Both the position numbers and the translations under genes were made by a program. DNA of 64,000 nucleotides from Macrostomum lignano (lineage: Eukaryota). The stretch is from positions 1-64,000 of the forward strand of contig NIVC01000801.1 of assembly GCA_002269645.1 (NCBI GenBank). The letters are read 5' to 3'. Shown here one piece after another: positions 3,250 through 59,240 of this stretch. Every line of letters starts with the position of its first letter. Positions within the stretch are counted from its first letter, which is position 1. Under the pieces are notes generated by a model. It did no database searches. It saw only the letters and a list, made by a program, of their open reading frames with translations, and was not told the origin of the DNA.

Positions 3250-3545
3250 TCACCCTCCCTCTCACCCTCCCTCTCACCCTCCTCTCACCCTCCCTCTCTC
3301 CTCCCTCTAAACCCTCCCTCTCACCCTCCCTCTCACCCTCCCTCTCACCCTCCCTCTCACCCTCCCTCTCACCCTCCTCTCACCCTCCTCTCACCCTCCC
3401 TCCCTCTCCTCCCTCTAACCCTCCCTCTCACCCTCCCTCTCACCCTCCTCTCACCCTCCCTCTCACCCTCCTTTTCACCCTCCCTTTCTCCCTCCCTCTA
3501 GCCCTCCCTCTCACCCCTCCCTCCTTGTTTATCACACCTTCCCTC
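3250..3545. repeat. 12-bp tandem repeat (CTCTCACCCTCC)
   Basis: Seen directly. Confidence 0.9.
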
Positions 3546-9295: not shown

Positions 9296-15553
<6,258 letters not shown>

Positions 15554-15954: not shown

Positions 15955-18900
15955 ATGTCTGGAGGCACTCCCGTTATCGTCTTGAGTAAGCATTTCTACT
16001 TATGACATTATCCTATTGAAATTTTATATTATTACATTTTTTTTCTTTTCCAAAGCACAACTACTTTTTAGTTATTCACAAAAGTCTAAGATTATAAAGA
16101 AGAAATAGGATGGGCATTAAAGCAATTAGCTATAAATAGAATTTGTCATCAAATAGCTGAAAAGCTAATAATCAAATGTATTAACAAGTTAGTTGTTAAG
16201 TTTTAACAAAAAACTTATTTAGAATTTTAAGCCATGCCCATTAAAATATACAATAAAGTGCAGCATATTCATCAGAATAAAAACATCTGAATCTGTTGCT
16301 GTATGCTATGCACTGCTAAAACAAAGGTGCCACCAAATTTGTCAACTCTATTGACAAATCCAGTTTACCCCACACTCCAGTCTCCAGATCATGTAGTATA
16401 TGCCCCAAAAATTTGGGCATGCATTGGCCTTGCATGCCAAAAGTAGGCGTGCACAGTTGGCATGCATCACTTCTAAGAAAATACACCTGGCATGCACTTT
16501 ATAGAATCACATAGAGGAGTTATTGTAAAGTAAAAAAGGTAAAAAAAGTTCATTCTTAAGCATAAATTTCCCACTTTCTGGGTTTTAAAGCTTGTAATAA
16601 GGCATTTAAAGAAATCTTTGCATGTATCAATTTTCCATTGTATATAGGCATAGTATTGCCAAAAAGGCAGAAAATTAACCAAATTATCTGTCAAAAATGG
16701 TCTATTATACAATGAAAAAAGGTATAAATTTATTCTTACAATGTAAGAAGGTCATTTATTGTTGCAACATTGGCAAAGTTTTAAGAATGGGCATGCACTC
16801 AAATTTTTTTTGGTGTGCATTTGTACCTATCAATTTTTGTTTAGGCGTACACCTAGCATGATCCAGACTATGGAGTTTACCTTACCATGCATTGTTGACA
16901 AATTTAGTTTACTTGACAATACATATGCTATTTATTAGTATATTTATTTACTATACACTAAAAACTGAAAGACAAAGCCTATTGAGAAGATACATAAAAG
17001 ATAACAAAGGAAGAATGGTTTTCTTATTAATTTTTTATAAGCTGTTAATACCCATAGATTTTAAACCCTTTGATTTCAAATATTAAATCCCTGAAACTAT
17101 TTTTGCACACATTTTGAAATCTGAAGTCCAAAACCTTGTTAATGGTTGAGATAACTAAAACTTGGGATTAAATTTGAATTAAAATGACTTACTTCACTCA
17201 AGAGATGCAATAAAGCATACATGTGCAACTGCTGGCTGATCTGGCCACCATAAATTGTGGTGGACCAGGGGTAAGTCGCTAAAATGCCACCCCAAAGAAT
17301 ATGGACATAGTACTAATTAGATGCCGAGGCATTTTGGCCTGATGGGACAGTCAAAGTTACTCCTGCCATTTACCTAAAAATTTTAATTTTGCTTTAAGGT
17401 TTCCTTCACAAGTAAGTTGCATTTTTGGTCAAAAAGTAAGTCGCATGGCCAGTGTAAATCAGGGGGGGTTGCGCATGTATGTAAAGTGTAATAAAGCATA
17501 TGCAGCACATAAACCACTGATAGATAGTCTCCCCCATTTTTTTAAGTAGGAAAGCATCAATGATACTTGACAAATCTTGCTTAAGACATTTTTAGTTTCA
17601 ATATATCTCAAAAATAAAAAAAACCTTGTATGTATCATATGCCATTGCATTATTCCTACTGCTTGAGTAGACACTATAATTAATTTCTATTGGTACTTAT
17701 AAATTCTCTTAATTAGTTTATTTTAACTTTTAAATAATAATTCTGGGCCTATAATCTTTCTTACTTGTGTTTGTTCTGGAAGAAAATTGATGAATTTTCA
17801 TTATTTATGCCAGAATTTTGATGGTGGCTACACACTTGGTGCAATGGACCAGGTTGATGCTGGCTATCTATGAATTCAGAATAAAAACTAGCAATGGCAT
17901 TGTATACATGCATAAATAAAAATGAATACAATTTTTAAAAGTTACATTTGAAAATGATTTGTGGACAATGGCATCAGATAGTTAATTTACAGAAAATCTG
18001 CTAATAAAGTCAATTTTTTAATTGAAAGTGCTTATTATTACTAAGAGTATTTTGATTCCTAGTGTTTTATACGGCATTAAAAAACTAACATCAGAGCTTA
18101 AGTTATGTTTGTTATCAAATGAATAAAAAATTCAAATTCCAACATGTATTGTGTTTGCTGCATATTCAACCCTGCACTGCAGTTCCAACCCCATCTGTCC
18201 AACCCCACCCCATAACTAGATCAAAACACCAAACGCGAGCAAGGTCGCAAAGTTCAACTGACCAACATCCAGTCTGCCAAGACTGTGGCTGATGTCATTC
18301 GTACATGCCTGGGCCCCCAGGCTATGCTCAAAATGCTCATGGACCCCATGGGCGGCATTGTCATGACCAACGATGGCAATGCCATCCTGCGCGAGATCAC
18401 CGTGCAGCACCCGGCCGCCAAGAGCATGATCGAGATCGCCCGCACCCAGGACGAGGAAGTGGGCGACGGCACCACCTCCGTGATCATCCTGGCTGGGGAG
18501 ATCCTGGCCGTGTCCACCGCTTTTCTGGAGCAGAGCATCCATCCTACCATTATCATCACCGCCTACAGGCAGGCGCTGGAGGATATGCTCGAGATGGTGA
18601 GCAGTACTAACTCCAATACTGGCTGGTTTAATGTCACCCCCTGAATCTCAATAATATCATCCCTGAATCTCAATAATCTCATCCCTGAATCTCAAATATC
18701 TCACCCCTGAATCTCAACTATCTCACACCTGAATCTCAACTATCTCACCCCTGACTCTCAACTATCTCACACCTGAATCTCAACTATCTCACCCCTGAAT
18801 CTCAATAATTACATCCCCGAATCTCAATAATTACATCCCCGAATCTCAACTATCCCACTCCTGAATCTCCTAAATCTCATTTTAACTATCTCATCCTTGA

Positions 18901-20339
18901 ATCTCAATTATCTCACCCTGAATCTCACAAATCTCATCCCTGAATCTCAACGATCTCACCCCTGATTCTTAACTATCTTATCCCTGAATCTCAGCAATCT
19001 CACATCAGAATCTGAATTATCTCATCCCTGAATCTCAAAAGTCCCTCCCACCCCTTAATCTCAACTATCTCATTCCTGAATCTCAGAAATCTCACCTCAG
19101 AATCTTAACTATCTCATCCCTGAATCTCAACTTTCTCCTGCCTGAATCTCAGCAATCTCACCCCTGAATCTCAACTATCTCATCCGTGGATCTGAATTAT
19201 CTCATTCCTGAATCTGAGCAATCTCATTCCTGAATCTCATCCCTGAATCTCAACAATCTCGCCCCGAACCCGCAGGCCTCCAGTCGCTACTCCGTAGACG
19301 TGGACACCAACGACACGGACAAGATGCACGAGCTGATCCGCACCTGCCTCGGCACCCGAGTGCACACCCAGTGGAACCAGGTGGCCTGCCGCATCGCCCT
19401 GGACGCGGTGCGCACGGTGCACAAGGAGAGGGGGTCGGACGGCCAGGCCCAGGAAATCGACATCAAGCGCTACGCTCGCATTGAGAAAATTCCTGGCGGC
19501 AGCATCGAGGACTCCTGCGTGCTGGACGGCATCATGATCAACAAGGACGTGGTGCACCCGCAGATGCGCCGGCGCATTGCCAATCGCGCATTGTGCTGCT
19601 GGACTGCGACCTCGAGTACAAGAAAGGCGAGAGCCAGACCAATGTGGAAATCCGCCAGGAGGAGGACTTCACGCGCCTGCTGCAGCTGGAGGAAGAGTAC
19701 ATCAAGACCGTCTGCCAGGCTGTGCTGGCCGTCAAGCCCGACCTGGTCATCACCGAGAAGGGCGTCAGCGACCTCGCCCAGCACTACCTGGTCAAGGCCG
19801 GCGTGTCCGTGCTGCGCCGCCTGCGCCGCACCGACCAGTGGCGAGTGGCCCGCGCCATCGGGGCCACCATTGTTAACCGGCCTGACGAGCTCAAGGAGGA
19901 GGACATTGGCACTGGCTGTGGCCTGTTTGAGGTCTGTGAGCTGTCTGTGTGCCTGTCTGTGTGCCTGTCTGTGTGTCTGTCTGTGTGTCTGTCTGTGTGC
20001 CTGTCTGTGTGCCTGTCTGTGTGTCTGTCTGTGTGCCTGTCTGTGAGCTGTCTGTGTGCCTGTCTGTGTGCCTGTCTGTGTGCCTGTCTGTGTGCCTGTC
20101 TGTGTGCCTGTCTGTGTGTCTGTCTGTGTGCCTGTCTGTGAGCTGTCTGTGTGCCTGTCTGTGTGCCTGTCTGTGTGCCTGTCTGTGTGCCTGTCTGTGT
20201 GCCTGTCTGTGTGCCTGTCTGTGTGCCTGTCTGTGTGCCTGTCTGTGTGCCTGTCTGTGTGCCTGTCTGTGTGTCTCTCTGTCTGTCTGTCCGTGTGCCT
20301 GTCTGTCTGTCTGTCTGTCTGTCTGTCTGCCTGTCTGTA

Positions 20340-20384
<45 letters not shown>

Positions 20385-20419
20385 GCCTGTCTGTATGTCT
20401 GTCTTAGTGTCTGTCTTAG

Positions 20420-20494
<75 letters not shown>

Positions 20495-20495
20495 G

Positions 20496-20528
<33 letters not shown>

Positions 20529-22055
20529 GCCCCCAGCTAACCCAGTCCCGCTCCCCACCCGCAGGTGCGCAAGATCGGTGATGAGTACTACTCGTACCTG
20601 GTGCAGTGCCGCAACCCGAAGGCCTGCACCATCGTGCTGCGCGGCCCCAGCAAGGACATCCTGAACGAGATGGACCGCAGCCTCAATGACGCCCTTAACG
20701 TTGCCCGCAACATCGTCTTGAAGCCGAAGCTCTGCCCGGGCGGCGGCGCCTTCGAGATGGCCATCGCCCACGCGGTGTCGGAGAAGGGCAAAGCGCTCAC
20801 CACGGTGCACCAGGGCCCCTACCGCGCCCTGGCCGCGGCCCTGGAGGTGATCCCGCGCACCCTCATCCAGAACTGCGGCGCCAACGTCATCAGGACTTTG
20901 ACGGCGCTGAGGGCGAAGCACGCGGGCACGGAGCCGGAGGACTGGATGTGGGGCGTGGACGGCGAGACGGGCAAACTGCGCCACATGAAGGCTGACGGCA
21001 TCTGGGAGCCGCTCAGCGTTAAAAATCAGGTGCTCAAGACCGCCACTGAGGTGAGGAGCTGCGGGATTTTACATTATTTTTTTGTGCTGAAATGTGCACC
21101 GGGTCAATATTCTCCAGCCTTTAAGACCGGCTACAATCCTCACCTGTTCACCTGAGAATCCTCACCTGTTCACCTGAGAATCCTCACCTGTTCACCTGAG
21201 AATCCTCACCTGTTCACCTGAGAATCCTCACCTGTTCACCTGAGAATCCTCACCTGTTCACCTTAGAGTCCCAACCTGTTCACCTGAAAATCCTCACCTG
21301 TTCACCTTAGAATCCTCACCTGTTCACTTGAAAATCCTCATCTGTTCACCTGAGAATCCTCACCTGTTCACCTGAGAATCCTCACCTGTTCACCTTAGAA
21401 TCCTCACCTGTTCACTTGAAAATCCTCATCTGTTCACCTGAGAATCCTCACCTGTTCACCTGAGAATCCTCACCTGTTCATCTGAGAATCCCCACCTGTT
21501 CACCTTAGAATCCTCACCTGTTCACCTTAGAATCCTCACCTGTTCACCTGAGAATCCCCACCTGTTCACTTGAGAATCCTCACCTGTTCACTTGAGAATC
21601 CTCACCTGTTCACTTGAGAATCCTCACCTGTTCACCTTAGAAATCCCCACCTGTTAACTTTAGAATCCCCACCTGTTCACCTTAGAATCCCCAGCTGTTC
21701 AGCTTAGAATCCCCACCTGTTCACCTTAAAATCCTCACCTGTTCAGCTTAGAATCCCCACCTGTTCACCTTAAAATCCCAGCCCGTTCACCTTAAAATCC
21801 TCACCTGTTCAACTTAGAATCCCCACCTGTTCACCTTATAAATCCCCACCTGTTCACCTTAGAATCCTCACCTGTTCACCTTATAAGCCTCACCTGTTCT
21901 CAAAACCGCCATGTCCCTCGCAGACGGCCATCCTTCTGCTCCGCATTGACGACATCGTGTCGGGCACGAAGAAGGGCGGCGTTGAGGGCGCCGCCGCCGC
22001 GGCCAAAGCTGCCGCTAACGAAGCTGCGCAGCCAGCTGCCGGAGGCGACGAGTGA
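15955..22055 (+). CDS. CCT3: T-complex protein 1 subunit gamma (CCT/TRiC gamma), about 560 aa, 5 exons, apparent 1-bp deletion near 19585
   Basis: Exons 15955-15985, 18220-18596, 19276-19931, 20565-21050, 21924-22055; GT-AG with consistent phases. Motifs MSGGTPVIVL-NQNTKREQGRKVQ, TNDGNAIL, DEEVGDGTTSV, EKIPGG, LEYKKGESQT, PGGGAFEM, LLRIDDIVSG. The frame shifts at AATCGCGCATT, where AAT CCG CGC ATT (NPRI) is expected. Confidence 0.97.
18635..19260. repeat. About 22-bp intronic repeat (CCCTGAATCTCAACTATCTCA)
   Basis: In CCT3 intron 2. Confidence 0.92.
19932..20530. repeat. 12-bp CTGTCTGTGTGC repeat grading into (TCTG)n
   Basis: Fills CCT3 intron 3 from the donor onward. Confidence 0.95.
21135..21900. 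repeat. 22-bp intronic repeat (AATCCTCACCTGTTCACCTGAG), about 34 units
   Basis: In CCT3 intron 4. Confidence 0.95.
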
Positions 22056-26881: not shown

Positions 26882-27857
26882 ATGTCGGTCCCGCAGCAGC
26901 AGGCCGAAGGTCCAAGCCGCCGCAGCGGCCGCCGCCTGACAGCCAGCAGCAGCAGCGGCGGCGGCCTGAAGACTGGCTGGCTCCGCCATCGACTTCGCCG
27001 ACTGTCGCTGCCGTCACTACTTGCCGGAGGCTTCAGCAGCGGCAGCGGCGGCGGCGGTGGCGGCAGGAGGCGGCGGCGACGGCCTCGAAGTCCTGAGCAG
27101 CCGCTGACGCAGAAGCCGCAACAGACGCTGCAGCCGCCGGTCTCTTCGACACCGAAGACACCTGAAATCCGAGTCGTGCCGCCTTGGCGACCGCTGAGCA
27201 ATGCGGAGCGGCACCGCATCAACCTGCTGTACCACCTGCTCCGCGACCACACCGACGCACTGCGGCTCTGTTCGCTGAGCACCGCGGTTGAAGGCGAGGA
27301 GGACACCGTGGATGCCGAGCTGCTCAGCTCCTGGTTGGGGGTTGCGGCGGATGAGCTGCTGGACGAGTTCGGCGATGATGACGAAGTCTGGACGTCGGGC
27401 GGCAGCGAGTGCGACTGCGAGTGCGACTGCGAGGAGGAGGACGAGGACTGCTTTAGGCTGAAGAGTGAGCTCGGTTTGCTGTATGGATAAACTCACTCCC
27501 AATAAACTCACTCCCGATAAACTCACTCCCGATAAACTCACTCCCGATAAACTCACTCCCGATAAACTCACTCCCGATAAACTCACTCCCGATAAACTCA
27601 CTCCCGATAAACTCACTCCCGATAAACTCACTCCCGATACTGCAGAGTGCAAATGCGACTCGGACTCCTGCCACAGCGGGCACTCGGCTGCTCCAAGCGG
27701 TTCAAGCACCAGCGTCGCACGGAGCGCTGGAACCAGGAGTACGACAGGGAATATCGGAAGACTGTGGGACTGTGGGACCGCAACTGGCACATCAAATGAT
27801 GAATATGATGATGACCTTGATTTCGATCCATTCTCTGACCCATCGATTCTACCTTGA
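26882..27857 (+). CDS. Uncharacterised two-exon protein, about 264 aa, with low-complexity N-terminus and acidic/Cys-rich segment
   Basis: Exon 26882-27464 (AAGA|GTGAGC) joins exon 27646-27857 (CTGCAG|AG) in phase 1 across an intron filled with a 15-bp repeat; GC-rich coding-like codons; no family recognised. Confidence 0.6.
27487..27640. repeat. 15-bp intronic repeat (GATAAACTCACTCCC)
   Basis: Fills the intron of the 26882 orphan gene. Confidence 0.95.
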
Positions 27858-28232
27858 CCTATTTTTAAACCCATCTATTCGACCCACTCTGACCCATCAA
27901 CTTGCTGATCTATGTGGTGTTCAGCATGTACTTTCTCGCTCGATCGAAAGCGCCCACGTGTAAATAGTATGTATCACAAGAAAGTGCATTAGTTTTAAGC
28001 GCCTGCACACACAGTGTAGTCACGTGTAAAAATGGTGACTTTTTATAAAGTTTTATAAAATTTTAATACCGGAACTTTCTACTTCCGCAGCCTCTTATAA
28101 TTGTGTCTTAATTATCGCCGCGTACTCGAACAGTGCTGCGCCGCAGCGTTGTTGATTTCTGTTCTTCCTCAAGTTTTCTTTGTTTGTTTTGAGACTGCGC
28201 TCGTGTTATTAAAAAAATTGGTCCCTCCTCCC

Positions 28233-28907: not shown

Positions 28908-29880
28908 CTAAAAGGGACTAAATTTAGCGGCAATGACAGAGACAGTGAGGCAAGATAAAGCAAATAAGAAAAGAAGCGTTTTAAAATCCAACTGCACAGA
29001 ATCGGGATTGAGAAGCAATGCAGGTTTAAAAAGCGGGACAAAGCAAACATTCTTCTTTTTGGAGACCTTAACACATGGACTAAATGAATGACGCTGCATA
29101 GTCACAATCCTATGCTTGATAGCTGTGATTTTATCGATTTTAACAAAAACTTTAATAGTATACGCTTTGAAAAATTATTATCTTATTAATACCAAAAAAG
29201 TCAAGCAGCTTACCTTAGCCACTTACCATCCAGCAACAGACTCCGGTCAACTTCGGTAACTAACAAAGCGAAAACCCTCACCAACAATGCCAAAGATTTT
29301 GATCTCGCAGATGGTGAGCAGGTCGCCTGTACGTGACTGAACTCGCAGTCTCCGGCCACCGGCACCGCAGGAAACGTTGAACACCGACTCGGGAGTTGAT
29401 GTCGAGTAGCTGGCGCACTCGGCGCCGTCCATCAGCAGCTGGAAGTTACCCAGCCTGTGCGGGCAGCAGTTGGCCCGGTTCCACAGGGAGACGAAGTCGA
29501 CTCGAACCGTGACGTCGAACTGAGCCTCCCACCAGCCGTTGTTGTCGCCTGTGGCGGTGCAGCTCCCGCCGTTCCAGTTCCGATTTGTGTTGCCATCGAT
29601 TGCTTTGCCGCAGACACTGCCGCTGCTCCAGTCCGAGGACTGCGAACAGGAATTGGCTGACAGCTGGGCTGATGCAGCTGAGAGGCTGGGCAGCAGCAGG
29701 GCTGCTAGAGTCTGCAACCTGAGTTGTATTGTAAGGGTTTATCAGCAGTGACCTACAGAAATTGTAGATGGTAGTAGTTAAATTGTAGTAGCTTTTACCG
29801 GATGCTACACTTCAAAATGATGCAAATTCGGTTGAGTCTTATCAAACTGACGGGAAAAATATTGAGTGGCTTAGGGCCAT
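28908..29880 (-). CDS. F-type lectin (fucolectin/FTP domain) protein with signal peptide
   Basis: Core exon 29718-29282 encodes SQSS..AIDGN..GSCTAT..WWEAQF..V..WNRANCC..RL..L.ICEIKIF, the F-lectin pattern. Putative exon 1 29880-29852 completes a signal peptide (MALSHSIFFPLQTLAALLLPSLSAASA). Putative downstream exons 29250-29227 and 29122-28908 fit by phase but are less certain. Confidence 0.8.
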
Positions 29881-32180: not shown

Positions 32181-32390
32181 AAGCAGCGATACTACCGTCT
32201 CAACTAGCATCAGTAAAAGTGTCATCAACCGAGAGACAAGGACTATTCATGAGAATGCAAGTGCTTCACTGCTCTCCAACTGACAGTTCTTAAATACACT
32301 ATTGGTTTTATCTAGGAGTGAGGTTTGACATGACATTAATAAGTGCGTATATCAATAGTTGGAGTTGGTCTGTTTTTTTACTACAGCTGC

Positions 32391-32604
32391 TCTAATTGGG
32401 CAGATGTGCAACCGACAGCTCAGCCGCAGCTATTGCGTGGCGCATTTGAAGGCTGCGTACGGCTGTTTAGTCCGCAATGACTGGGGGGGGGGGGCGGGTC
32501 GCAACACACCCTCAATTACCCCCAGGTAATGCTGGCACCCATTTTACAGCTGGGTGAACTGAAGCAATGCAGTGTTAAGTGTCTTGCTCAAGGACACAAA
32601 TTGT
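32391..32604 (-). mobile_element. 5'-truncated copy of the tRNA-headed SINE family
   Basis: Close match to 47105-47290 and the reverse complement of 58300-58490 (GTGTCCTTGAGCAAGACACTTAAC...CACCCAGCTGTAAAATGG core, GGTTGCACATCTG tail). Confidence 0.8.
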
Positions 32605-32913
32605 TCACGCCTTGTTTCACACAAGAGGTTTCCGTTTCTGTCCAGTTCTTCACTATTTGTCTAGTCCAATTCTACCTGTTCGCTACTGAATTCTATCTTT
32701 CAACTGTGTGGCTGAACTTGTGCAACCAATGGCAACTAAGTTAACGAGAAACTAGCTCGGATCCCAATCCCCGCACTGTACCCAGCAGGATCTGCTGACA
32801 GAGCGTGCACCGGTGCGAGCTGTCAAATCTGCAGGGAGTTCCCGCGTCTCGTTTATTTGCTCAATCTGGAGTCTCCCTCATGGAAGGCCAAGCCCCGAGT
32901 GAGCTGGTGGCAC

Positions 32914-35900
32914 CACAGACCAATAAGTAAGACTAGACTGCGCATGGAGAGTAAAAAGTGTGCCTCTTTCCCAGTTATAAAAATGGCACCCAGCCAACCC
33001 CCCCCTCCGCGGTCGATAGTGGGTAAAGAATTTCCCTTCCTAAACCACTCCCACTCGTCTGCTTTTCGGTTCCTACAGGGCACAACAACAACAAAAAATA
33101 TTATCATAGCTTTTTAGACTCGTTTATAAATATTTTTCAAGAGATTCTTTCTAAAGACTTTTAATTTAATTAAAGCTTGCCTGTATAAAAACTTGCAGAA
33201 TCAAAATAATGAGTTCAACTTACCAGGTATCCGCTAGAATAGGCTAAACTACAGATTAAGAAATACCGCTGTTCGTAGAAGCTTTTGTCTCTTTCCTGAT
33301 TTTCTTCTGGGACATGAAAGGTCTTTCGCCACCTTCTTCATTCGAACCCGCATGTAGAGCAGCGCCATGATGCGAATCAAATGAAGCTTGTGGGATTCAA
33401 TGCCAATGCTGGCAGCCGCGGAATGCAAGTCAAGTTCGGGAAATGCATCAACTGACATGCGCAACGTCTCCTGGACAGCCACATCGCTAGAAAATCCGCT
33501 GTTATAGTTTGAACGTCGAATGATTGTTTCGGCATGAAGCAAAACTTGCAAGACATTGTTGCTTGGAAAAATCAACCCCCCAGTCCCTTCTTTATTCAGC
33601 ACATTTTTCATGGTGACAAGAGAGCAGGGCAACCGTGCAGCCGCTGACATTTCAGTGCTGGAAATGAGTGCTGATCTGCACGGCGCGCATTCAATTGATT
33701 TAAGCATGCTACGGACCACTGCGCCTGCAATGTAATACACAATCGACTGGCATACTTCGCATTTTGATGCATTCACACAATGTTGAATGGAATTAAGGCT
33801 TAAACCCAAACTGTTCTGAGCACTTATCTGCTTCCATTGAGGTTTTCCTGCCTCTGTTGATTGTGACGAAGGCAGACATGATAATGACAACTGAATAGTG
33901 GCATCCTGTTGCTTAACATTGGGACTAGTCAATTGGAGAATTCCACCTCCAGCGTGCACTAGTAACTGTCTAAAGGCTGAGCGAAACTGTCTCGGAGTCG
34001 GATTGTGATTCCAGCCGTTTCGAAGTCTGACGGCATTAAAAAATAACTCAAGAAAATCCTGCGACAACTTGTAAGTGCAAAGAAAGAAAAAACGACAACT
34101 TGAAAACAAATACTTGGCAAGGTCCATAACAGCCTCACAATTCACCATGAAGCCGAGAAAGCCTGTTTTCTTTGCAGTTTCAACAATTTTGCGTCCAGAC
34201 AGATTTTCAAGACTTCCGAGAAGCTTAATCGAGTCAGTAAAGAAGTCAATAAAGTCCGACTGGTTGTCAGCTCTTAGAGCCATTTTGGCCCCGTAATTTA
34301 CTAGTCGCTTGGAGTTAAAGGCGTCGAACAAGTCATTCATGTGCTCAATAAAATCTGCCGTCACAAGTACATCATGGTGCTCGAATCCGGCCAAAGCTTG
34401 CTGATGTACCCACCACAGGGAGTCAGCAACTGACTTACTAAAAAGCTGGGATACCAAATAGACCTTCATCTTTAAATTGGCAAAGTTGATGTGATGCCTG
34501 CTTAGTTTATTTCCCAGTTTGAGCCCGTGACTCTCCTGAACTTGCTGCAATGGTGAAACATATTTCCAATCAATATTCCCCCTATTCGGCCAAACTATCG
34601 TGCCCATTGATTGCCACTGATTGCGAATCAGCTTCAACATATGAGGCGGATCGAGGAAGGCAGAAACCTGAATGCTTGGGTCACAAGGATGAGGGAACGT
34701 GGCGACAATTGAGTCCGGAGAACTAATTTTAGCCCCAAGAAGTTCAATAGCTCGAATGTTGTGCTGCGTTCCATCGCATGTGAACGATGTGGCGACAACA
34801 CCAACCTGATAAAGCCTCTGAATTGATTCTTCTACAACACTAGACAAAAATTCACCATCCACACCATTTACTAGAAAATAACCCAATGGCAACTTCCAAT
34901 AGTTCTTCAGACCCACAGCCATCACTACCAATGCCGACGTCGCCTCCTGATCACTTGCCTTGCCATCTCCTTTGTCAACATAGCCGAAGAACATGCCTTC
35001 ATTCGAATTCCATTCAATCAGTGATTCCAATGACATCTCATCGGCCACTACATTGCAGTAGTCAAAGGCAGTGCCATCGTCGGAGCTGCGTCGATGAGAA
35101 AGTTCTTGGAAAGCCTGATCACAAAATCCAGGAAAGCATTTAGCGTTTGAAATCCATCTACGAAGAGATGCAGGGTGCGGAAGCTGAAAATACTTTCTGA
35201 CATATTCATAGGCTTTGGGGCTGTAAGAGTGCAAGGTGGACGCGAATTTTCGCACTTCAGTAGGAAACTTTCTTGTCCGCTTATTGCTTTGAGGCAAAAT
35301 GCTGCTAATCAAAGAATTCGAGGTCAAAAAATTCAGGCGCGACGCAGCCGCTTCATTCAGAATGCTCTTTTTCCTCAACTCTCCGATTGCCTCCTTCAGG
35401 GTTCTCGCTCTTCGCTTAATTTGCCTATGCTTTGAGCGCAATGATCGAATTTTGCGGTACTTGTTTCGAAGAGAACGCTGTAAGATTTCAATAGCTTTCG
35501 CACCTTTCTTGGACTTGGCATGAGCCGCTAGAAGCCTATTGTACCTGCGCCTCAGATTTTTCAAAGCTCTTACCTTCGTATTGAAATCTTCCCTGCTTAC
35601 ACAGTTGGCATGAAGGTCTGGCTGAGGAAGATCGTCATTGTTAGTAATGGCTTCCAAATCAGATTTCGTCTCGCTGCCTACTTGAGGCGCCTGAAATATT
35701 TCAAAATCAACTTCTCGAGCAGCCGCGGCTGCTGTGATTGTCTTTCTCTTCTTCTCAGCTGGCTGCAGATGTTCCGGAAACGCAGGAAAGATTGAAGGAA
35801 CAGCGTGCGGATACAGTCTTCTTCTGGCGTTGGGCAAGAAGCCTTCAAACTGCTCCTTGAAACAAGACTCAGAAAAGTGCTCTGAGCAGACTTTTGAACT

Positions 35901-36379
35901 TTTTGACGGTTTGAAGTCTTTTCGCCTCAGTGCTGCGACCCACTTCTTCTTCGTCTCATCGTCCTTGGGAAAGGAATGGAAGGAGACTCCGGAAGTTGAA
36001 GCTGCGCTATTCGTGCAACCAAAAGCACTGCAATAGCTGCCACATTTTCGAGTCTTCGACGGCTTGGAGAAATTAACTTCTTCCATCGCTTGATACAAAG
36101 TTGGTTGAATTAAATCGGTTTGATTCTAGTAGATAGGTAAATTTTGTGTTGTTTTAGCACCGAGAGAATGGCTTATTCGAACGCATATAAAAGGTGGGTT
36201 AGAAACCATAAGGACCAGTAAAATGCTCTGTACCCACTATCCTGTTCCCCCTCACCTTCACATACCATCGATTTTTTTTTCGCGGGAGCAAGGGACCATT
36301 TTTTCCACAGCGTTTTTGTCAAAAAACACGCCAAGGCAGGGAATGGGGCTTGCGCAGTCTAGATACTTCTTGGTCTGTG
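32914..36379 (-). mobile_element. Complete P-superfamily DNA transposon, 3466 bp
   Basis: 8-bp direct duplication GGTGGCAC at 32906-32913 and 36380-36387; imperfect TIRs CACAGACCAA(T/G)AAGTA..CTAGACTGCGCA at 32914-32944 and 36351-36379; encloses an intact transposase ORF. Confidence 0.95.
33249..36098 (-). CDS. THAP-domain P-element transposase (THAP9-like), 949 aa, single uninterrupted ORF
   Basis: THAP C2CH zinc finger (CSAFGC..FHSFP..W..VCSEHF..AVPSIF), coiled coil, RNase H-like core with VADEM, FTCDG, DPPHMLK, KMKV..QLFS and SQDFLELFF motifs. Confidence 0.95.
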   Translation of the reverse strand: MYQAMEEVNFSKPSKTRKCGSYCSAFGCTNSAASTSGVSFHSFPKDDETKKKWVAALRRKDFKPSKSSKVCSEHFSESCFKEQFEGFLPNARRRLYPHAVPSIFPAFPEHLQPAEKKRKTITAAAAAREVDFEIFQAPQVGSETKSDLEAITNNDDLPQPDLHANCVSREDFNTKVRALKNLRRRYNRLLAAHAKSKKGAKAIEILQRSLRNKYRKIRSLRSKHRQIKRRARTLKEAIGELRKKSILNEAAASRLNFLTSNSLISSILPQSNKRTRKFPTEVRKFASTLHSYSPKAYEYVRKYFQLPHPASLRRWISNAKCFPGFCDQAFQELSHRRSSDDGTAFDYCNVVADEMSLESLIEWNSNEGMFFGYVDKGDGKASDQEATSALVVMAVGLKNYWKLPLGYFLVNGVDGEFLSSVVEESIQRLYQVGVVATSFTCDGTQHNIRAIELLGAKISSPDSIVATFPHPCDPSIQVSAFLDPPHMLKLIRNQWQSMGTIVWPNRGNIDWKYVSPLQQVQESHGLKLGNKLSRHHINFANLKMKVYLVSQLFSKSVADSLWWVHQQALAGFEHHDVLVTADFIEHMNDLFDAFNSKRLVNYGAKMALRADNQSDFIDFFTDSIKLLGSLENLSGRKIVETAKKTGFLGFMVNCEAVMDLAKYLFSSCRFFFLCTYKLSQDFLELFFNAVRLRNGWNHNPTPRQFRSAFRQLLVHAGGGILQLTSPNVKQQDATIQLSLSCLPSSQSTEAGKPQWKQISAQNSLGLSLNSIQHCVNASKCEVCQSIVYYIAGAVVRSMLKSIECAPCRSALISSTEMSAAARLPCSLVTMKNVLNKEGTGGLIFPSNNVLQVLLHAETIIRRSNYNSGFSSDVAVQETLRMSVDAFPELDLHSAAASIGIESHKLHLIRIMALLYMRVRMKKVAKDLSCPRRKSGKRQKLLRTAVFLNL

Positions 36380-37894
36380 GGTGGCACCTACGCTACGAGT
36401 AACGATTTCTAAGAAACGGGTCTCTCTAGAAGGCGCCGATTAGGGCTCAGGAGATCTACCGAGTCATCCCAAGCGAGAAGCCTGTACAACATTGGTGGCA
36501 ACGGCCGGAGCCTGAGACTGGCCCGTTCAACGACCTGAGAACCACAAGCACTTCAGAAGAGTAGATCAAATTGACGCTAGCGTAAACAATGAGAGGCCCT
36601 GAGCCCGCTCCATCATTTCAGCCAGCCAGCCTCACCCTGACCCGGGATCAACAACGGCTGCGGACCCCCTCCCCCCACCCCCTGGCAATGGGATCAAGCC
36701 GGCCGGGAGACAACAGGGAGCTGGAGAGAGGGCCCAGACCCCTCCGGTAGATGAGCAGAAAAACAAACGTACCGTTGACGGTGAAGAACTAAGAGTATTG
36801 AGAGACAGAAACTTTGAAAATGGGAGAACTGCATATCGTAACTCAACCAATGCGTTAAACCCCCCCTCTGCCACCCCTGCGAGGGGAGAGAGGATCCCCC
36901 TAGCAACTAGCTAGTTTATCGCTTTTGGGCTAAACTTTATCAGGGGCTGCGTCCCAACTCAAAAACATTGCGAGTGGGTACTGTGGAAAGACACACCAAG
37001 GATGATACATAACAAATAACGTTATATTATAGTTGGGACGACCTATACGAGCCTAAGGCTAGGCTACTAAAAATGCGTTTATGAGACAATGTGCTTGTGC
37101 ATATGGTTTTGTCATAGACAATGATTAATTTTAGTCTCTCGTGGCCACTCGTCAAAAATTAATCATTCTCTACCTCAAAACCGAAACCTATATATACAAT
37201 CTATACCAGTATTATCATTATTATCATCAGTTATTCCAAGCTGAGCTGGCTATCCCAGCTGCACCCAAGTGATGGAGCGAATCACGAGCCGAGCCACAAT
37301 AGCCGGAATCCGCCTACCTTTCTGCGATGAGCATTCTGTGGAGACAATAAAAGCCATGAGTCTTCACATGCTTGCATCCTTAGTTAGTGCTTATCATGGA
37401 TCTCGAGTGACTCATTCTAATGTGTTCATGTGAATCGACCTTCACACTGAAGGCATTCTCGTTTGTTAGTAGTTTCTACTGTTCATGACTCCGTTGTATT
37501 TTCCCGTGATGTTCACGTTAGTGCTGTTAGTATTGGAATTTTGCTAATGAGGAGTTGATTGCCCAGTGATTGGCGGAACATGTCGCTTCTATAATAATAT
37601 GAACAACTTTTAGTTATTACAGTTCCTCACGTTTGCTGTGTATATCCTTCATGTCATTTATAGCGTTATACAGTCGAATAGGAGGGATCGGGAATCTCCA
37701 GGACTCATTTGACAACAGCGCAACGCTTCACACTACTGAAAAGTTTTTACTGAAATTATTTTTCACTACTGCATTTGATTCTATGGCTTTGCCTATATTC
37801 ACTCAGTGGCCCATGTGGAGAATATAGGATCTATGATGACTCAAAATAAATAGCACCCAAGTGGTCGAACTTCTAACAAGTATTGGGTAGTGTA

Positions 37895-42558: not shown

Positions 42559-43352
<794 letters not shown>

Positions 43353-47092: not shown

Positions 47093-47381
47093 CGATTTCA
47101 CTTGCAGATGTGCAACCGACAGCTCAGCCGCAGCTATTTGCGCGCCGCATCTGAAGGCTGCGTACGGCTGTTCAATCCAAGGACTGGGGGGTCGCCACAC
47201 ACACCCGCAATTACCCCAGCTAATGCTGGTACCCATTTTACAGCTGGGTGAACTGAAGCAATGCAGAGTTAAGTGTCTTGCTCAAGGACACAAATCGTTT
47301 CGAGAAAAAAATTGAGTCGAGAATCGAACCCCCGACCTTTCATTCGTGAGTCCGACGCTCTGACCACTGGGCTGCAACCCC
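47062..47381 (-). mobile_element. Apparently full-length tRNA-derived SINE, about 320 bp
   Basis: Minus strand: A-box-like GCAGCCCAGTGGTCAGAGCG, B-box GGTTCGATTC, conserved core GTGTCCTTGAGCAAGACACTTAAC..CAGTTCACCCAGCTGTAAAATGGGTACC, tail GCACATCTGCAAGTGAAATCG followed by (ATT)10. Confidence 0.85.
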
Positions 47382-53641: not shown

Positions 53642-56600
53642 GCCTCTCCGCTTTCTCGGGCTTCTTCTGCTCAGGACTTTTACTCGATATTAGTCTGTGT
53701 TTGTGCAGCTCTTTCAGCAGCAGCAAAGTTTGGACTACTCATTAATCCTGTTTGAGGATTAACTAAATCTCTGCCGATGCTGGTGGGAAGTTTAGGGATG
53801 GTTTTAGAGGGGGTCTAGGAGAGTCTATGGTAGCCTAGGGAGTGTAGAGAGCCTAGGGTAGTCTTGGGAAGTCTAGGAGTATCCTAAAGAGTTTAGTAGC
53901 GTATTCTAGGGGGATATAGCAGTGTGTAAGGATTGTGTAGGGTAGTCTAGGGTAGTCTAAGGTAGTCTAGATAGTCTAGAGTAGTCTAGAGTAGTCTAGG
54001 ATAGCCTAGAGTAGTCTAGGGTAGTCTAGGGTAGTCTGGGGTAGTCTAGGTTAGTCTAGGGTAGTCTAGGGTAGTCTAAGGTAGTCTGGGGTAGTCTAGG
54101 GTAGTCTAGGGTAGTCTAGGGTAGTCTAGGATAGTCTAGGGTAGTCTAGGGTAGTCTAGGGTAGTCTAGGGTAGTCTAGAGTAGTCTAGGGTAGTCTAGG
54201 GTAGTCTAAGGTAGTCTGGGGTAGTCTAGGGTAGTCTAGGGTAGTCTAGGGTAGTCTAGGGTAGTCTAGGGTAGTCTAGATAGTCTAGAGTAGTCTAGAG
54301 TAGTCTAGGATAGCCTAGAGTAGTCTAGGAAAGACTAGGATAGACTAGGGTAGAGTAGGATAGTCCAAGGGTAGTCTAGTGTAGTCTGGGATAGTCTAGG
54401 GTAGTCTAAGGTAGTCTGGGGTAGTCTAGGGTAGTCTAAGGTAGTCTGGGGTAGTCTAGGGTAGTCTAGGGTAGTCTAGGGTAGTCTAGGGTAGTCTAGA
54501 GTAGTCTAGGATAGCCTAGAGTAGTCTAGGAAAGACTAGGATAGACTAGGGTAGAGTAGGATAGTCCAAGGGTAGTCTAGGGTAGTCTGGGATAGTCTAG
54601 GGTATTCTAGAATAGTCTAAGGTAGTATCGAGTAGTCTAGAGTAGTCTAGGGTAGTCTAGGGTAGTCTTTTGAAACTCAATAGTAGACATTAGAGTTTTA
54701 GAATAGTCGATGAGCAAAGCTGGTTTGGCCAACTCACCGTCCAGTGGCTGAGAAGTCGCAGAAGATCACTGAAAGCAGAGAGCGCATTGCTCATTAATAA
54801 TATCGCGGATCAAACAAGACGATTAGCTAATGAAGTTAAAAAATTTTCACACCCTTTCTAAGGCCGTAGGGCCCAACAAAGCAGGCATCCGAGCCGATCA
54901 TGTTCCGGAACAGGTAGTCCATTTTGCACCTGGCCGAGCTCAGCGCCTCCGCCCTTCGCCAGTCGTCCGTCACGGACTGGAAGAGAAGGGGGGAGAGACT
55001 GGAGTGACAATAGATCAGTGACAGACAGATTGGAGTGACAATAGATTAGAGTTGCAGACAGATTGGAGTGACAACAGATCAGAGTGACAGACAGATTGGA
55101 ATGACACTTGATTGGAGTTACAATAGATCAGAGTGACAGACAGATTGGAGTGACGCTAGATCAGAGTGACAGACAGATAGGACTTGGAGTACAACAGATC
55201 AGAGTGACAGACAGATTGGAGAGACAATATATCAGAGTGACAGTCATTGGTGTGACAATACGTAGATCAGAGTAACAGATCGATTGGAGTGACACTTAAT
55301 TGGAGTGACAATAGATCAGAGTGACAGACAGATTGGAGAGACAATATATCAGAGTGACAGTCACTGGTGTGACAATAGATCAGAGTAACAGATCGATTGG
55401 AGTGACACTTAATTGGAGTGACAATAGATCAGAGTGACAGACAGATTGGAGAGACAATATATCAGAGTGACAGTCACTGGTGTGACAATAGATCAGAGTA
55501 ACAGATCGATTGGAGTGACACTTAATTGGAGTGACAATAGATCAGAGTGTCAGACAGATTGGAATGATAATAGATCAGAGTGACAGACAGATAGGACTTG
55601 GAGTACAACAGATCAGAGTGACAGACAGATTGGAGAGACAATATATCAGAGTGACCGTCATTGGTGTGACAATACGTAGATCAGAGTAACAGATCGATTG
55701 GAGTGACACTTAATTGGAGTGACAATAGATCAGAGTGACAGACAGATTGGAGAGACAATATATCAGAGTGACAGTCACTGGTGTGACAATAGATCAGAGT
55801 AACAGATCGATTGGAGTGACACTTAATTGGAGTGACAATAGATCAGAGTGACAGACAGATTGGAGAGACAATATATCAGAGTGACAGTCACTGGTGTGAC
55901 AATAGATCAGAGTAACAGATCGATTGGAGTGACACTTAATTGGAGTGACAATAGATCAGAGTGTCAGACAGATTGGAATGATAATAGATCAGAGTGACAG
56001 ACAGATTGGAATTACAATAGATCAGAGTGACAGACAGATTGGAGTGACAGACAGATTGGAGTAACAATAGATCAGAGTGACAGACAGATTGGAGTGACAG
56101 ACAGATTGGAGTGACAGACAGATTGGAGTGACAGACAGATTGGAGTGACAGACAGATTGGAGTAACAATAGATCAGAGTGACAGACAGATTGGAATTACA
56201 ATAGATCAGAGTGACAGACAGATTGGAGTGACAGACAGATTGGAGTAACAATAGATCAGAGTGACAGACAGATTGGAGTGACAGACAGATTGGAGTGACA
56301 GACAGATTGGAGTGACAGACAGATTGGAGTAACAATAGATCAGAGTGCAAGACAGATTGAAGTGACAACAAATCAGAGTGACAGACAGATTGGAGTGAGA
56401 CAAGATTTGAGTAATAGTTAATTGGAGTGACAGATTATTGGAGTGACAGATGACTGCAGTGACAAATGATTGGAGTGACAGATGATTGGAGTGACAGATG
56501 ATTGGAGTGACAAATGATTGGAGTGACAGATGATTGGAGTGACATTTGAGTGCAGTGACAAATGACTGGAGTGACATATGATTGGAGTGACATATGAGTG

Positions 56601-57308
56601 GAGTGACAGATTTATTGGAGTGACAAATGACTGGAGTGCACACAGACGGTCAGGAAAGTCTACAGATTAAACTTCAACAAGAACGGCCTCCTTCCTTCAG
56701 GCTGACGATCTCACCTCAAGCTTCTTCTCAAAGTACTGCGCCTTGGTCACGTAGCCGCTGCAGTCCAGTTCGTAGTTCAGAGCACCGCTGAAGGACCTGG
56801 ACACTGAGCTGTGAACAGAGGGAGATGCTTGATGATGATGCTGCTGCTGCTGATGCTCAATTCTCGCAATATCTGGCAGATGCGAAGTTGATCCCGAGGT
56901 TCGAATCCGCTGCTGATTTTGTCGATTTCTTATCGGATATTGATGGCGCTGTGACTGCTGATGAGGCTGACTTCTTGGCGGAGTCTGGGAGCACTGCTTC
57001 CTGGGCAGGGGGATCCTGCTGCCAACGAACACGGGGACCTCCTTGTACTTGTCCAGCATTATTGGAGGCCGGTGGTTCTTCACCTGCTGGTTGCTGGGGC
57101 GGTACTGCCTGCGCATACCTGTGCTCGGCTGGTCTGTGTCAAAATTATGGCCGGCCACGAATGACAGCCGGGTGAAATACGATTTCCGGACAGGGGCCGG
57201 AGGGGGGTTAACAGAGGACTCCGGCCAGTGCTTGAGATGAGGCGAAATTCGCTTCCATTGGATGGGACGAATATGCAGGCTCGGTGTGCGGAGGCTGGGG
57301 TTGGCCAA
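47687..57308 (-). CDS. Class-V aminotransferase / cysteine-desulfurase-fold protein lacking catalytic residues; 10 exons traced, 5' end unresolved
   Basis: Exons (minus): about 57308-56715, 54976-54853, 54768-54738, 51830-50874, 50390-50183, 49765-49692, 49430-49319, 48714-48568, 48474-48418, 47836-47687; all junctions GT-AG and in phase. Family motifs: DYLFRNMIG..FVGPYGLRKVIFCDFSATGR.L..IEDFL...VLP, VGPY, CDVTG, VWDLA, LLGGGGSAGLLV, RIRCGLAFKL, PIFAF..LLHHGFVAALLSDLYGVQ, RP....DLPYF, HGWKLLP.Y..EP.SG.WRH, RWFLLP.EA. Confidence 0.85.
47845..48300. repeat. Degenerate GGGATTTTT intronic repeat
   Basis: Last intron of the aminotransferase-fold gene. Confidence 0.8.
48921..49303. repeat. 10-bp intronic repeat (CTACGGACAC)
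   Basis: Seen directly. Confidence 0.97.
52000..52896. repeat. 23-bp intronic repeat (GAAGAATGTGAGAAATTTCCCTT)
   Basis: Period read from 52331 to 52354. Confidence 0.93.
53567..53639. repeat. (CT)n microsatellite
   Basis: Seen directly. Confidence 0.97.
53935..54668. repeat. 10-bp intronic repeat (GGGTAGTCTA)
   Basis: Seen directly. Confidence 0.95.
54995..56640. repeat. Compound intronic array built on TTGGAGTGACA/GATCAGAGTGACAGACAGA, with larger repeated blocks of about 114 bp
   Basis: Blocks beginning GATCAGAGTGACAGACAGATTGGAGAGACAATATATC recur several times between 55200 and 55870. Confidence 0.9.
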
Positions 57309-58260: not shown

Positions 58261-58521
58261 AGAAGGTCGGGGGTTCGATTCTCGACCCATTCGGAACAAT
58301 TTGTGTCCTGAGCAAGACACTTAACTCTGCATTGCTTCAGTTCACCCAGCTGTAAAATGGATGCCAGCATTAGCTGGGGTAATTGAGGGTGTGTGGCGAC
58401 CCCCAGTCCTTGGACTGAACAGCCGTACGCAGCCTTCAGATGCGCCGCGCAATAGCGGCGGCTGAGCTGTCGGTTGCACATCTGCCCATTAGAACAAGTG
58501 AAATCAATTAATTTATTATTA
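58261..58521 (+). mobile_element. Copy of the tRNA-headed SINE family, truncated upstream of the B box
   Basis: AAGGTCGGGGGTTCGATTCTCGAC, same core and GGTTGCACATCTG..CAAGTGAAATCAATTAATTTATTATT tail as 47062-47381. Confidence 0.8.
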
Positions 58522-59226
58522 TCTTAAAACGGAACTCTTTAAATAGTGACAATTTGCACTGGCTCTGACACGTTCTGCTGCTAAGAGGCTTGAGACTACG
58601 GAGAACCCCCCCCCCAGTGAGAAGGCACAGAAACCATATTTTTCCTCGTCATTCGAATTTTCATTATCAAAAGTTGCTTCAACCCAATTCTGATATTTCC
58701 TAGCCGACCGAGAGCTCCCAGCAGTGCTGGAGCGCCGCCCACTCACCGCAGCCTGGCTGCTCTGTGTAACAGAAATGCCACGGGAGGGGGGGGGAGAGAC
58801 GAGACGGGATCAGAGCTCAAGACACTCCCTAACTCAGTCCTCGCCTATTGATTTTCGTCTTGATCAGCGATTTGCGGCTGTTCCCAGCTCACCGCGCTTG
58901 ACAACCACCCTCTCCTTCCCAGTACTGTGCCCCCAGAATTCAAGGAGTTTCCAACTGCAGCAGTGCTGGGTAGGCGGGAGCCCACCGCCCCGCACGCGGG
59001 AATCAATACATATCGATTCTGCGCTCCCAGCGCTCTCTGTCTTGCACAAATCGATTCCAATATTTGATATTTTCCCAACTGGAAATATTCGCGCTGAGAA
59101 GCTTGGGCTAGAAGACACATACACAATTTTTTAAATAAAATTCCTGATATTTTCCGCGCAAAAAAGCAGCGAAATGCCGCAACAGCCCCAGCTCGCACTG
59201 GAACGCTAGACCGCAGTCAAACTCTG

Positions 59227-59240
59227 GTTACCATGGCAAC
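59227..59240. promoter_or_regulatory. RFX X-box GTTACCATGGCAAC overlapping the SLC17 start codon
   Basis: Exact fit to GTTNCCATGGNAAC; the central ATG is the predicted start at 59233. Confidence 0.45.

Follow-up and report, generated by a model that had tools for sequence, protein, structure and literature searches.

A structurally complete P-superfamily transposon with an uninterrupted THAP transposase ORF

A first-pass annotation of a 64-kb stretch of DNA (hereafter the window, meaning the whole stretch that was analysed) described a structurally complete, possibly active P-superfamily transposon, and this locus raises the question of whether the element belongs in that superfamily and whether it may still be able to move. 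The placement stands. Positions 32914-36379 (3,466 bp, coordinates that agree with that annotation) are, as read from the DNA sequence, a structurally complete and autonomous cut-and-paste transposon of the P superfamily (P element/THAP9-type), as the Pfam domain set, the resemblance to the Drosophila P transposase in both sequence and predicted fold, the catalytic and GTP-contacting residues, the terminal inverted repeats (TIRs) and target-site duplication (TSD), and the collinearity with relatives all bear out. As genome annotation this is ordinary, since the kind to which this new member belongs is very common and well understood. The second part of the question requires a more graded answer.

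The claimed identical 8-bp target duplication was recovered exactly, with GGTGGCAC abutting the TIR tip directly on the left (32906-32913) and recurring on the right (36380-36387) with 8/8 positions matching; these two copies flanking the element are the only occurrences of GGTGGCAC on the plus strand of the 64-kb window. TIRs of about 30 bp starting CACAG were likewise found at both ends. The TIR at the 3' end of the element relative to the open reading frame (ORF) is CACAGACCAATAAGTAAGACTAGACTGCGCA (31 nt, 32914-32944, plus strand) and pairs with that at the 5' end, which reads inward as CACAGACCAAGAAGTATCTAGACTGCGCA (29 nt, 36351-36379, minus strand), with two mismatches and one 2-nt indel between them. 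The terminal 3' base of the element is G, as at the Drosophila end that is contacted by GTP. On both sides GGTGGCAC is followed by C, so that the repeat could also be read as 9 bp, GGTGGCACC; since the ends would then no longer be symmetrical, an 8-bp TSD with CACAG...CTGTG tips is the simplest reading. By our own estimate, for one fixed pair of positions the chance of an 8/8 flanking repeat is about 1.5e-5 and that of a perfect 10-nt inverted tip about 1e-6, and a chance origin of the two is negligible even when some 2.5e5 position pairs around the ORF (also our estimate) are allowed for. TIRs enclosed by a 7-9-bp, typically 8-bp, TSD are what is seen in the P superfamily, and the first-pass annotation was right that an 8-bp TSD and a CA-starting TIR are present here, but it went too far in taking them to define the superfamily. 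hAT elements likewise generate 8-bp TSDs, and these features are therefore not enough, leaving the transposase to classify the element.

The transposase is encoded on the minus strand by a single-exon ORF (33249-36086, as placed by the ORF list, Pfam and alignments), which runs from an ATG at 36086 to a stop at 33249-33251 and specifies 945 aa. The stop-free frame described previously was confirmed, but its length of 949 aa holds only for the listed ORF (33249-36098), which starts at a TTG upstream of the first ATG. When the element was shuffled 300 times, no open frame exceeded 224 codons, compared with the 949 observed, and TSD, TIRs and a 945-codon ORF occurring together are not plausibly chance. 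On either side of the ORF, 36087-36350 would represent the 5' UTR and a putative promoter region, with a TATA-like sequence at ~36184-36193, and 32945-33248 the 3' UTR, in which putative ATTAAA-type poly(A) signal variants lie near 33162-33177 on the ORF strand.

Pfam places THAP, Tnp_P_element HTH, TNP-like RNaseH_N, GBD and RNaseH_C domains along this protein, all far beyond the cut-offs. The THAP zinc finger that had been claimed occupies residues 19-100 (35787-36032; PF05485, E 8.5e-20), with the C2CH residues C19, C24, C67 and H70 in place and an AVPSIF motif, and it is matched in sequence and fold by the THAP1 and THAP2 structures and in fold by the Drosophila P THAP domain (3kde). It is followed by one continuous long helix in the AlphaFold model (residues 165-239, 35370-35594), a putative coiled-coil or leucine-zipper region which, by comparison with the region at that position in the Drosophila enzyme (PMC7776569), we take to be responsible for dimerisation, and by the P-transposase HTH DNA-binding domain (residues 236-311, 35154-35381; PF12017, E 3.3e-22). 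The N-terminal half of the RNase H fold (residues 318-451, 34734-35135; PF21787, E 3.6e-37) carries D349 (35040-35042) and D438 (34773-34775), and its C-terminal part (residues 672-706, 33969-34073; PF21789, E 8.1e-16) carries the GTP-contacting D677 and the catalytic E680 (34047-34049), with the GTP-binding insertion domain between them (residues 482-601, 34284-34643; PF21788, E 6.6e-33). The C-terminal domain (residues 712-945, 33252-33953) has a conserved CxxC (C800/C803) and H899 and aligns to the last residue (..NL) with three of the nearest relatives (P0001-P0003); it gave no match in our local copy of Pfam. PF22824, which appears in precomputed Pfam matches of relatives, went undetected with local Pfam in both the window protein and P0001, and we treat it as uninformative.

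The residues on which chemistry would depend are preserved. The VADEM, FTCDG and SQDFLE motifs pointed out in the first-pass annotation align with D230, D303 and E531 of the Drosophila enzyme, which gives the catalytic triad D349/D438/E680. The GTP-contacting residues listed for Drosophila P transposase (PMC7776569) are conserved at 8/8 positions: K527, K541, V542 and S550 correspond to Drosophila K385, K400, V401 and S409, and F587, D588, N591 and D677 to F443, D444, N447 and D528. Within a 13-member family alignment the window protein retains 63 fully invariant columns, and in columns otherwise invariant it shows a single private change, which is conservative (L to V). phmmer found the Drosophila P transposase chain 6p5a with E 1.7e-39 (139 bits, residues 211-711), and the AlphaFold model (mean pLDDT 69.8, and mostly >80 in the catalytic core) has its best PDB matches in 6P5A (6p5a_A) and 6PE2, at E 3.7e-22 and a target TM-score of 0.78. 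The element therefore combines a C2CH THAP finger, an HTH domain, an RNase H DDE triad, a GTP-binding insertion and the P fold. Membership of the hAT superfamily was considered and rejected, given that Pfam found no BED finger or hAT dimerisation domain and that the fold match to Hermes was weak (target TM-scores of 0.25-0.28, with Transib and RAG likewise far below 6P5A).

The absence of an intron from the transposase ORF, which the first-pass annotation took to imply some other form of control, is borne out by the alignments, in which the uninterrupted ORF is collinear from first to last residue with relatives of 927-934 aa and has no unaligned insert, and therefore no retained intron is visible. 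A hidden in-frame intron at residues 657-671 (YLFSSCRFFFLCTYK), a stretch that is T-rich on the ORF strand, has GT...AG-like borders and lies immediately before the catalytic E, was rejected because each of its residues pairs with coding sequence in every homologue. With its 945-codon ORF reading as uninterrupted, the element would not belong to the canonical Drosophila type, in which the gene is split by introns and splicing of the last is regulated. The transposase genes of Galileo and 1360 also lack introns, and the ancestor too has been proposed to be intronless (PMC3698922); because of this, and because 26 of the 84 related loci fetched first (L001-L084) have uninterrupted ORFs of at least 800 aa, the intronless ORF is not unusual, and an uninterrupted ORF is a common and probably ancestral state in the P superfamily. 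It also follows from the missing intron that retention of IVS3, as in Drosophila, cannot be the means of control. If the element is controlled at all, this must be at the level of transcription, small RNAs or protein.

Internal to the TIRs, the two ends share an 11-mer, GATAGTGGGTA, in inverted orientation. A repeat search placed one copy 102 nt from the 3' tip (33015-33025, plus strand) and the other at 36231-36241 on the minus (ORF) strand, 139 nt in from the 5' tip, and an 8-mer within it occurs only three times in 64 kb, two of these being the inverted copies in the element ends. The 11-mer includes AGTGGGTA, which faces inward at each end of the window element and at each end of one relative (L086), is present at both ends of another (L085) as a variant with one extra base, and occurs as a single copy in a third (L002). 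In L085 and L086 the TIR itself includes the AGTGGGTA-type motif, at 11-24 nt from the tip as opposed to 102-139 nt in the window element. AGTGGGTA resembles both of the Drosophila THAP sites, TAAGTGGA and TAAGGGTT (PMC3698922), and we consider it the best candidate for a docking site of the THAP finger. A further motif, AAAATC(A/G)AT(A/G), was picked post hoc near the ends of relatives and is absent from the 3' end of the window element; we regard it as a lead only.

The nearest relatives of the transposase (P0001, P0002, P0003, P0134 and P0135, from loci L001-L003, L085 and L086) come from public read and metagenome assemblies and are 42-46% identical to it over the full length, whilst among themselves they reach at most 53.9%. 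Since no relative exceeds 46% identity, the window element would form a family of its own. The relatives have the same economical layout, with a 5' region of 170-290 nt and one intronless ORF of 904-934 aa in contigs of 3.1-3.8 kb. The TIR tip CACAGAAC is shared by at least two, L001 and L085, with transposase identities of 45-46% to the window protein. Each end of L085 and of L086 bears a TIR, and the contig of L001 begins exactly at the TIR tip, as would be expected if copies with different flanks collapse during assembly. More broadly, >1,000 clusters of such transposases at 50% identity were found at E <= 1e-30. Collections drawn from ~15 billion proteins held none more than 46% identical to the window transposase, an exact-protein look-up found no contig for it, and a scan of metagenome contigs gave no TIR match. 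An automated TIR/TSD search of the 26 related loci with ORFs of at least 800 aa, most of whose contigs are too short or collapsed for this, yielded one convincing complete element (L010).

The element resembles the Drosophila P element in its 8-bp TSD, in its ~30-nt TIRs with a CA start and 3' G, and in having 11-bp subterminal inverted repeats, here candidate transposase-binding sites, at unequal distances of ~100-140 nt from the ends. The two transposases follow one domain order, in which a THAP finger, a coiled coil and an HTH domain precede an RNase H domain interrupted by the GTP-binding domain, with a C-terminal domain last; they also have in common the DDE triad and every GTP contact, and no structure matched the predicted fold better than 6P5A. 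The differences are also considerable. The aligned core is ~24% identical, the TIRs are alike in sequence only at the CA start, and the Drosophila gene has three introns where the window ORF has none, so that germline restriction through IVS3 is inapplicable. The Drosophila protein has 751 aa compared with 945 aa here, and the C-terminal domain of the window protein is longer and THAP9-like. Vertebrate THAP9 is closer by bit score, at 264 bits (27% identity) versus 139 bits for the Drosophila enzyme. Zebrafish Pdre2/zfTHAP9 differs in having 13-bp TIRs that start CATACC, as opposed to 29/31 nt starting CACAG, and it is known from ~50 mostly deleted genomic copies and experimental evidence of excision, whereas the window element is known from the sequence of one copy. 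Galileo and 1360 (Hoppel/ProtoP), compared here by their published description, share the intronless THAP transposase gene (PMC3698922) but have 7-bp TSDs, and the TIRs of Galileo are very long and Foldback-like.

Within the 64-kb window, BLASTN with the element returned the self-match only, with no second copy or MITE, and a TIR pattern allowing up to three mismatches found the two known ends and one match at chance level, with no solo ends. BLASTN with the rejoined flanks found no empty paralogous site in the window; it did return a 210-bp interspersed repeat, unrelated and ~300 bp away from the insertion. Rfam and tRNA scans of the window were empty. The window also contains a CCT3 gene, the exons of which are at best 73% identical across insects, fish and molluscs; this marks the host as an animal with no close relative in the database, and lends no support to the flatworm host raised in the first-pass annotation. 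The surroundings of the insertion are repeat-rich and apparently non-coding animal DNA.

The element would have arrived by transposition into this repeat-rich, apparently non-coding stretch. If it behaves as the Drosophila enzyme would predict, the THAP finger, probably together with the HTH domain, would dock on the subterminal sites, the coiled coil would dimerise the transposase, and GTP-dependent synapsis would pair both ends, GTP holding the last 3' nucleotide of the element, a G, in place within the RNase H active site. The 3'-OH ends of the excised element would then attack the target 8 bp apart, and repair of the gaps would leave the GGTGGCAC duplication. Given that nothing in this copy is visibly broken, we favour, on sequence grounds, the reading that it is a single autonomous P-superfamily copy that is probably still competent for transposition or was so until very recently. 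Counting against it are the single copy visible in the window, the lack of any protein above 46% identity in the collections, the differences between the TIRs, and the example of zebrafish Pdre2/zfTHAP9, a full-length copy of which, complete with TIRs and TSDs, can excise without integrating (PMC10983969).

It may instead be that this is a genuine P-type insertion which has died too recently to have gathered disabling mutations and is now immobile, for example through the TIR indel, missense changes at positions other than the conserved columns, or silencing by the host, no active lineage being left. This is unlikely but carries appreciable weight. A perfect TSD and an open ORF fit youth as well as activity, no further copies or derivatives were detected in the window or the collections, and the differences between the two TIRs may be native or may impair synapsis. 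However, active elements commonly have imperfect TIRs, there is no identifiable lesion, the catalytic residues, GTP contacts and THAP zinc ligands are all intact, and the conservative substitution noted above is the only private change in invariant columns.

Rather improbable is an incipient host gene, in which selection for a cellular function would maintain one THAP9-like transposase, present as a single copy and with its old ends still attached, as in zebrafish Pdre2/zfTHAP9. Such a gene would account for the long, intact ORF and for the fact that no other copies were seen in the window or the protein collections. Yet domesticated THAP9 is marked by loss of TIRs and TSD, and here the perfect TSD, the long TIRs and the preserved subterminal repeats suggest that little time has passed since insertion. 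The nearest relatives are also transposon-like, with two TIRs in L085 and L086 and the contig start at the tip in L001, and the first catalytic D, which is lost in the aligned reptile THAP9 proteins, is kept in the window protein. That the locus is not P-type at all but a hAT-type element, or a product of chance or assembly, is very improbable indeed, for although the 8-bp TSD and the CA-starting TIR, taken by themselves, would fit hAT too, Pfam found P-type domains only, the Hermes TM-score is 0.28 against 0.78 for 6P5A, the conjunction of TSD, TIRs and ORF lies beyond plausible chance in a window with 0 N bases, and the Pfam matches, Drosophila alignment, conserved residues and fold effectively refute it.

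Returning to the favoured reading of a competent or recently competent transposon, we would go further only tentatively, in suggesting that it could be an active autonomous member of an undescribed, compact and intronless P lineage characterised by a CACAGAMC tip and the AGTGGGTA THAP-site motif. No transposases other than those of the P type are known to have GTP as a cofactor (PMC7776569), and human THAP9 has been reported to be catalytically active (bioRxiv 10.1101/2020.10.06.328815). Classical Drosophila transgenesis rests on P-type transposons, and very few of these have been proven active outside Drosophila. An intact single-exon copy is simple to clone and test, and could add a second natural system in which to study GTP-dependent transposition and the recognition of THAP sites. 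If active, the element would be an example, from beyond flies and fish, of a natural P-type transposon that depends on GTP, and may serve as a gene-transfer vector for its own host or for other animals; should that host be a laboratory animal, it might provide a native vector.

The plus strand of the window has GGTGGCAC at two places only, 32906-32913 and 36380-36387, and directly between these two copies sits a P-type element of 3,466 bp (32914-36379). Its left terminal inverted repeat (TIR) starts at 32914 (CACAGACCAATAAGTAAGACTAGACTGCGCA, 31 nt) and its right TIR ends at 36379 (CACAGACCAAGAAGTATCTAGACTGCGCA as read inward on the opposite strand, 29 nt), the two differing by two mismatches and one 2-nt indel. 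The simplest reading of these boundaries is a target site duplication (TSD) of 8 bp with symmetrical CACAG...CTGTG ends, a 9-bp repeat GGTGGCACC being the formal alternative. The 8-bp duplication and the TIRs of about 30 bp starting CACAG, both proposed in the first-pass annotation, are therefore borne out.

The superfamily of the element is settled by its transposase, for which Pfam identifies a THAP domain (residues 19-100), a P-transposase HTH (236-311), the N-terminal half of an RNase H domain (318-451), a GTP-binding insertion domain (482-601) and the C-terminal part of the RNase H domain (672-706), every one of them scoring far above its curated cut-off. THAP domains are confined to animals (PMC7776569). 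Among solved structures, the Drosophila P transposase 6p5a is closest in sequence (residues 211-711, E 1.7e-39), and mapping this alignment onto the Drosophila numbering places D349, D438 and E680 at the catalytic D230, D303 and E531. Eight residues of the Drosophila enzyme are reported to hold GTP (PMC7776569), and in the same alignment all eight are conserved here (K527, K541, V542, S550, F587, D588, N591 and D677). An AlphaFold model of the transposase (mean pLDDT 69.8, catalytic core mostly >80) has 6P5A and 6PE2 as its top PDB matches (E 3.7e-22, target TM-score 0.78), and folds residues 165-239 into one long helix, matching the position of the leucine-zipper dimerisation region in the Drosophila enzyme. 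The hAT group, which also makes 8-bp duplications, is rejected by the domains, residues and fold matches alike, with Hermes, Transib and RAG giving far weaker fold matches than the P element structures. The assignment to the P superfamily, with a THAP transposase carrying D/D/E motifs, was thus correct when first made.

The transposase is encoded by a single open frame on the minus strand (33249-36098); the longest open frame found in shuffled versions of the element was 224 codons. The uninterrupted frame of 949 aa described initially stands, with the qualification that this length counts from a TTG, the first ATG (36086) giving 945 aa. The protein is collinear with its three nearest relatives (927-934 aa) from the first residues to the last (ending ..NL). 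An alignment of 13 family members has 63 fully invariant columns, all retained here; at one other column, where the remaining 12 members agree, this protein alone has a conservative L to V substitution, a private-change count no higher than that of other members. We considered whether a small in-frame intron might lie in the T-rich stretch at residues 657-671, and rejected this since the stretch aligns with ordinary coding sequence in every homologue. As judged from sequence, the gene looks undamaged and its frame appears complete and without an intron.

The first-pass annotation reasoned that an intronless element must be controlled in some way other than that of Drosophila. This holds insofar as Drosophila-style intron retention cannot serve for tissue control, and any regulation must act at transcription, via small RNAs or on the protein. 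The lack of an intron is itself unremarkable: among the related loci, 26 of the first 84 to be retrieved (L001-L084) have an uninterrupted frame of at least 800 aa, and Galileo and 1360 also lack introns, an intronless ancestor of the superfamily having been proposed (PMC3698922). An intronless frame would therefore be the rule outside Drosophila-type P elements.

Inside the ends, the 11-mer GATAGTGGGTA is present in inverted orientation, at 139 nt from the 5' tip (the right side of the element) and at 102 nt from the 3' one. Similar internal inverted repeats, likewise unequally spaced at the two ends, are found in the Drosophila P element (11 bp) and in zebrafish Pdre2 (12 bp). Its core, AGTGGGTA, occurs three times in the 64-kb window, twice as these subterminal sites; the third occurrence (36973-36980), about 590 bp past the right end, is probably due to chance. 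The core faces inward in both TIRs of one related locus (L086), is found with one extra base in both TIRs of another (L085), and is present in a third (L002) as TAAGTGGGTAA. Given its resemblance to TAAGTGGA and TAAGGGTT, THAP sites defined by experiment in Drosophila (PMC3698922), we propose this core as a candidate THAP-binding site. L001 and L085, with transposases only 45-46% identical to that of the window, keep the TIR tip in the form CACAGAAC, which argues for a functional tip. The element ends in a 3' G, and in the Drosophila complex GTP contacts the 3'-terminal G (PMC7776569). A further motif, AAAATC(A/G)AT(A/G), picked after inspecting the sequences and scored with one mismatch allowed, faces inward at both ends of the related contigs L001, L002 and L003, at 18-105 nt from the end of the contig. 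It also occurs in the 5' end of the element (about 36271-36280) and was not found in the 3' end, where there is only TCGATAG.

By analogy with Drosophila (PMC7776569), the THAP and HTH domains would bind the subterminal sites, the coiled coil would make the protein dimeric, and the ends would be paired through GTP-dependent synapsis. Cleavage of the ends would fall to the RNase H active site (D349/D438/E680), after which the ends, with the terminal G positioned by GTP, would attack the target 8 bp apart, the GGTGGCAC duplication arising from repair.

Open frames that cross the reconstructed empty site reach 62 codons at most; the element probably landed between genes or within an intron. A roughly 210-bp interspersed repeat has one copy (32388-32606, plus strand) 300 bp from the insertion site and two more at 47104-47299 (plus) and 58294-58496 (minus), which are 87% and 88% identical to the first. 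About 3.2 kb from the transposon is an exon for an F5/8 type C / NedA-like galactose-binding domain (29250-29738, minus). Exons of the chaperonin CCT3 (TCP-1 gamma) lie on the plus strand at 18216-18641 and 20541-21152 (Pfam Cpn60_TCP1, E 1e-41 and 4.8e-48), with further probable exon sequence at about 19234-20043; the gaps between them coincide with tandem-repeat arrays (18630-19239 and 19932-20529). Among the proteins listed, identity to these exons reaches at most about 73%, the best matches being scattered across insects, fish and molluscs, and is 53-57% for those of parasitic flatworms. The host's own CCT3 is therefore absent from the collection; the host is an animal of a thinly sampled lineage, with nothing here for or against a flatworm. 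Two plus-strand exons match Major Facilitator Superfamily transporters, that at 61866-62288 passing the Pfam cut-off and that at 59098-59685 falling below it (20.2 bits). Minisatellites and microsatellites are extremely dense in the window: Tandem Repeats Finder lists 91 rows scoring >= 80, and many arrays, built of 10-70-nt units, extend over 0.3-1.6 kb, with strong local GC skew (for example 690-1567, 4142-4865, 5451-6188, 11889-12913, 21135-21899, 42559-43352 and 54996-56646), and many of the long 'ORFs' are translated repeats. This may also be true of a 285-aa ATG frame matching Pentapeptide repeats (27017-27874, minus; Pfam E 1.7e-14), within which a 15-nt tandem repeat falls (27486-27639).

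The 64-kb window yielded no further copy of the element and no MITE, solo end or paralogous empty site, the exact transposase protein was on none of the indexed contigs searched, and the TIR matched no metagenome contig scanned. Relatives are abundant, with 1,096 representative clusters at E <= 1e-30 and 15,186 at E <= 1e-3 (the latter including some THAP-only matches), as well as 282 confirmed relatives in a metagenome scan. Another apparently complete P-like element, about 4.1 kb long, lies on the metagenome contig L010 (3795-7924), one of the 26 loci mentioned above; its uninterrupted frame encodes 864 aa, its TIRs are about 35 nt long and CGGCACAG is its probable 8-bp TSD. L001, a Logan contig, starts exactly at the TIR tip CACAGAACAATAAG, and L002 opens (1-30) and closes (3354-3383) with the same 30-mer, inverted. 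A de Bruijn assembly is expected to break in this way where a multicopy element begins or ends, or within a TIR, which suggests that these relatives are repeated in their hosts. Indirectly, and for other genomes, this groups the clade with mobile elements and not with host genes. L085, the contig of the closest relative, has a perfect 36-nt TIR (CACAGAACATAGGAGTAGGGTAGAATGCTGATGCGC), preceded on both sides by about 12 nt more of inverted similarity (1-100; 3450-3660); no 8-bp TSD was found in the flanks of its TIRs, and its left end, GTTCTGTC followed by CACAGAAC, is palindromic with the tip. Insertion head to head, a palindromic target site or a chimeric scaffold could each explain this structure.

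The perfect TSD, preserved ends and undamaged 2.8-kb frame of the window element mean either that little time has passed since insertion or that selection has acted. Activity is plausible, and a zebrafish case illustrates that such a copy can excise yet not integrate (PMC10983969). Use as a native transgenesis tool, as suggested in the first-pass annotation, would hinge on what the host is. The nearest proteins (from a 5.8-billion-cluster collection and a 1.84-billion-representative library) are only 42-46% identical, so the element would found its own family; it adds a new and well preserved member to a kind of transposon that is well known and very widespread.
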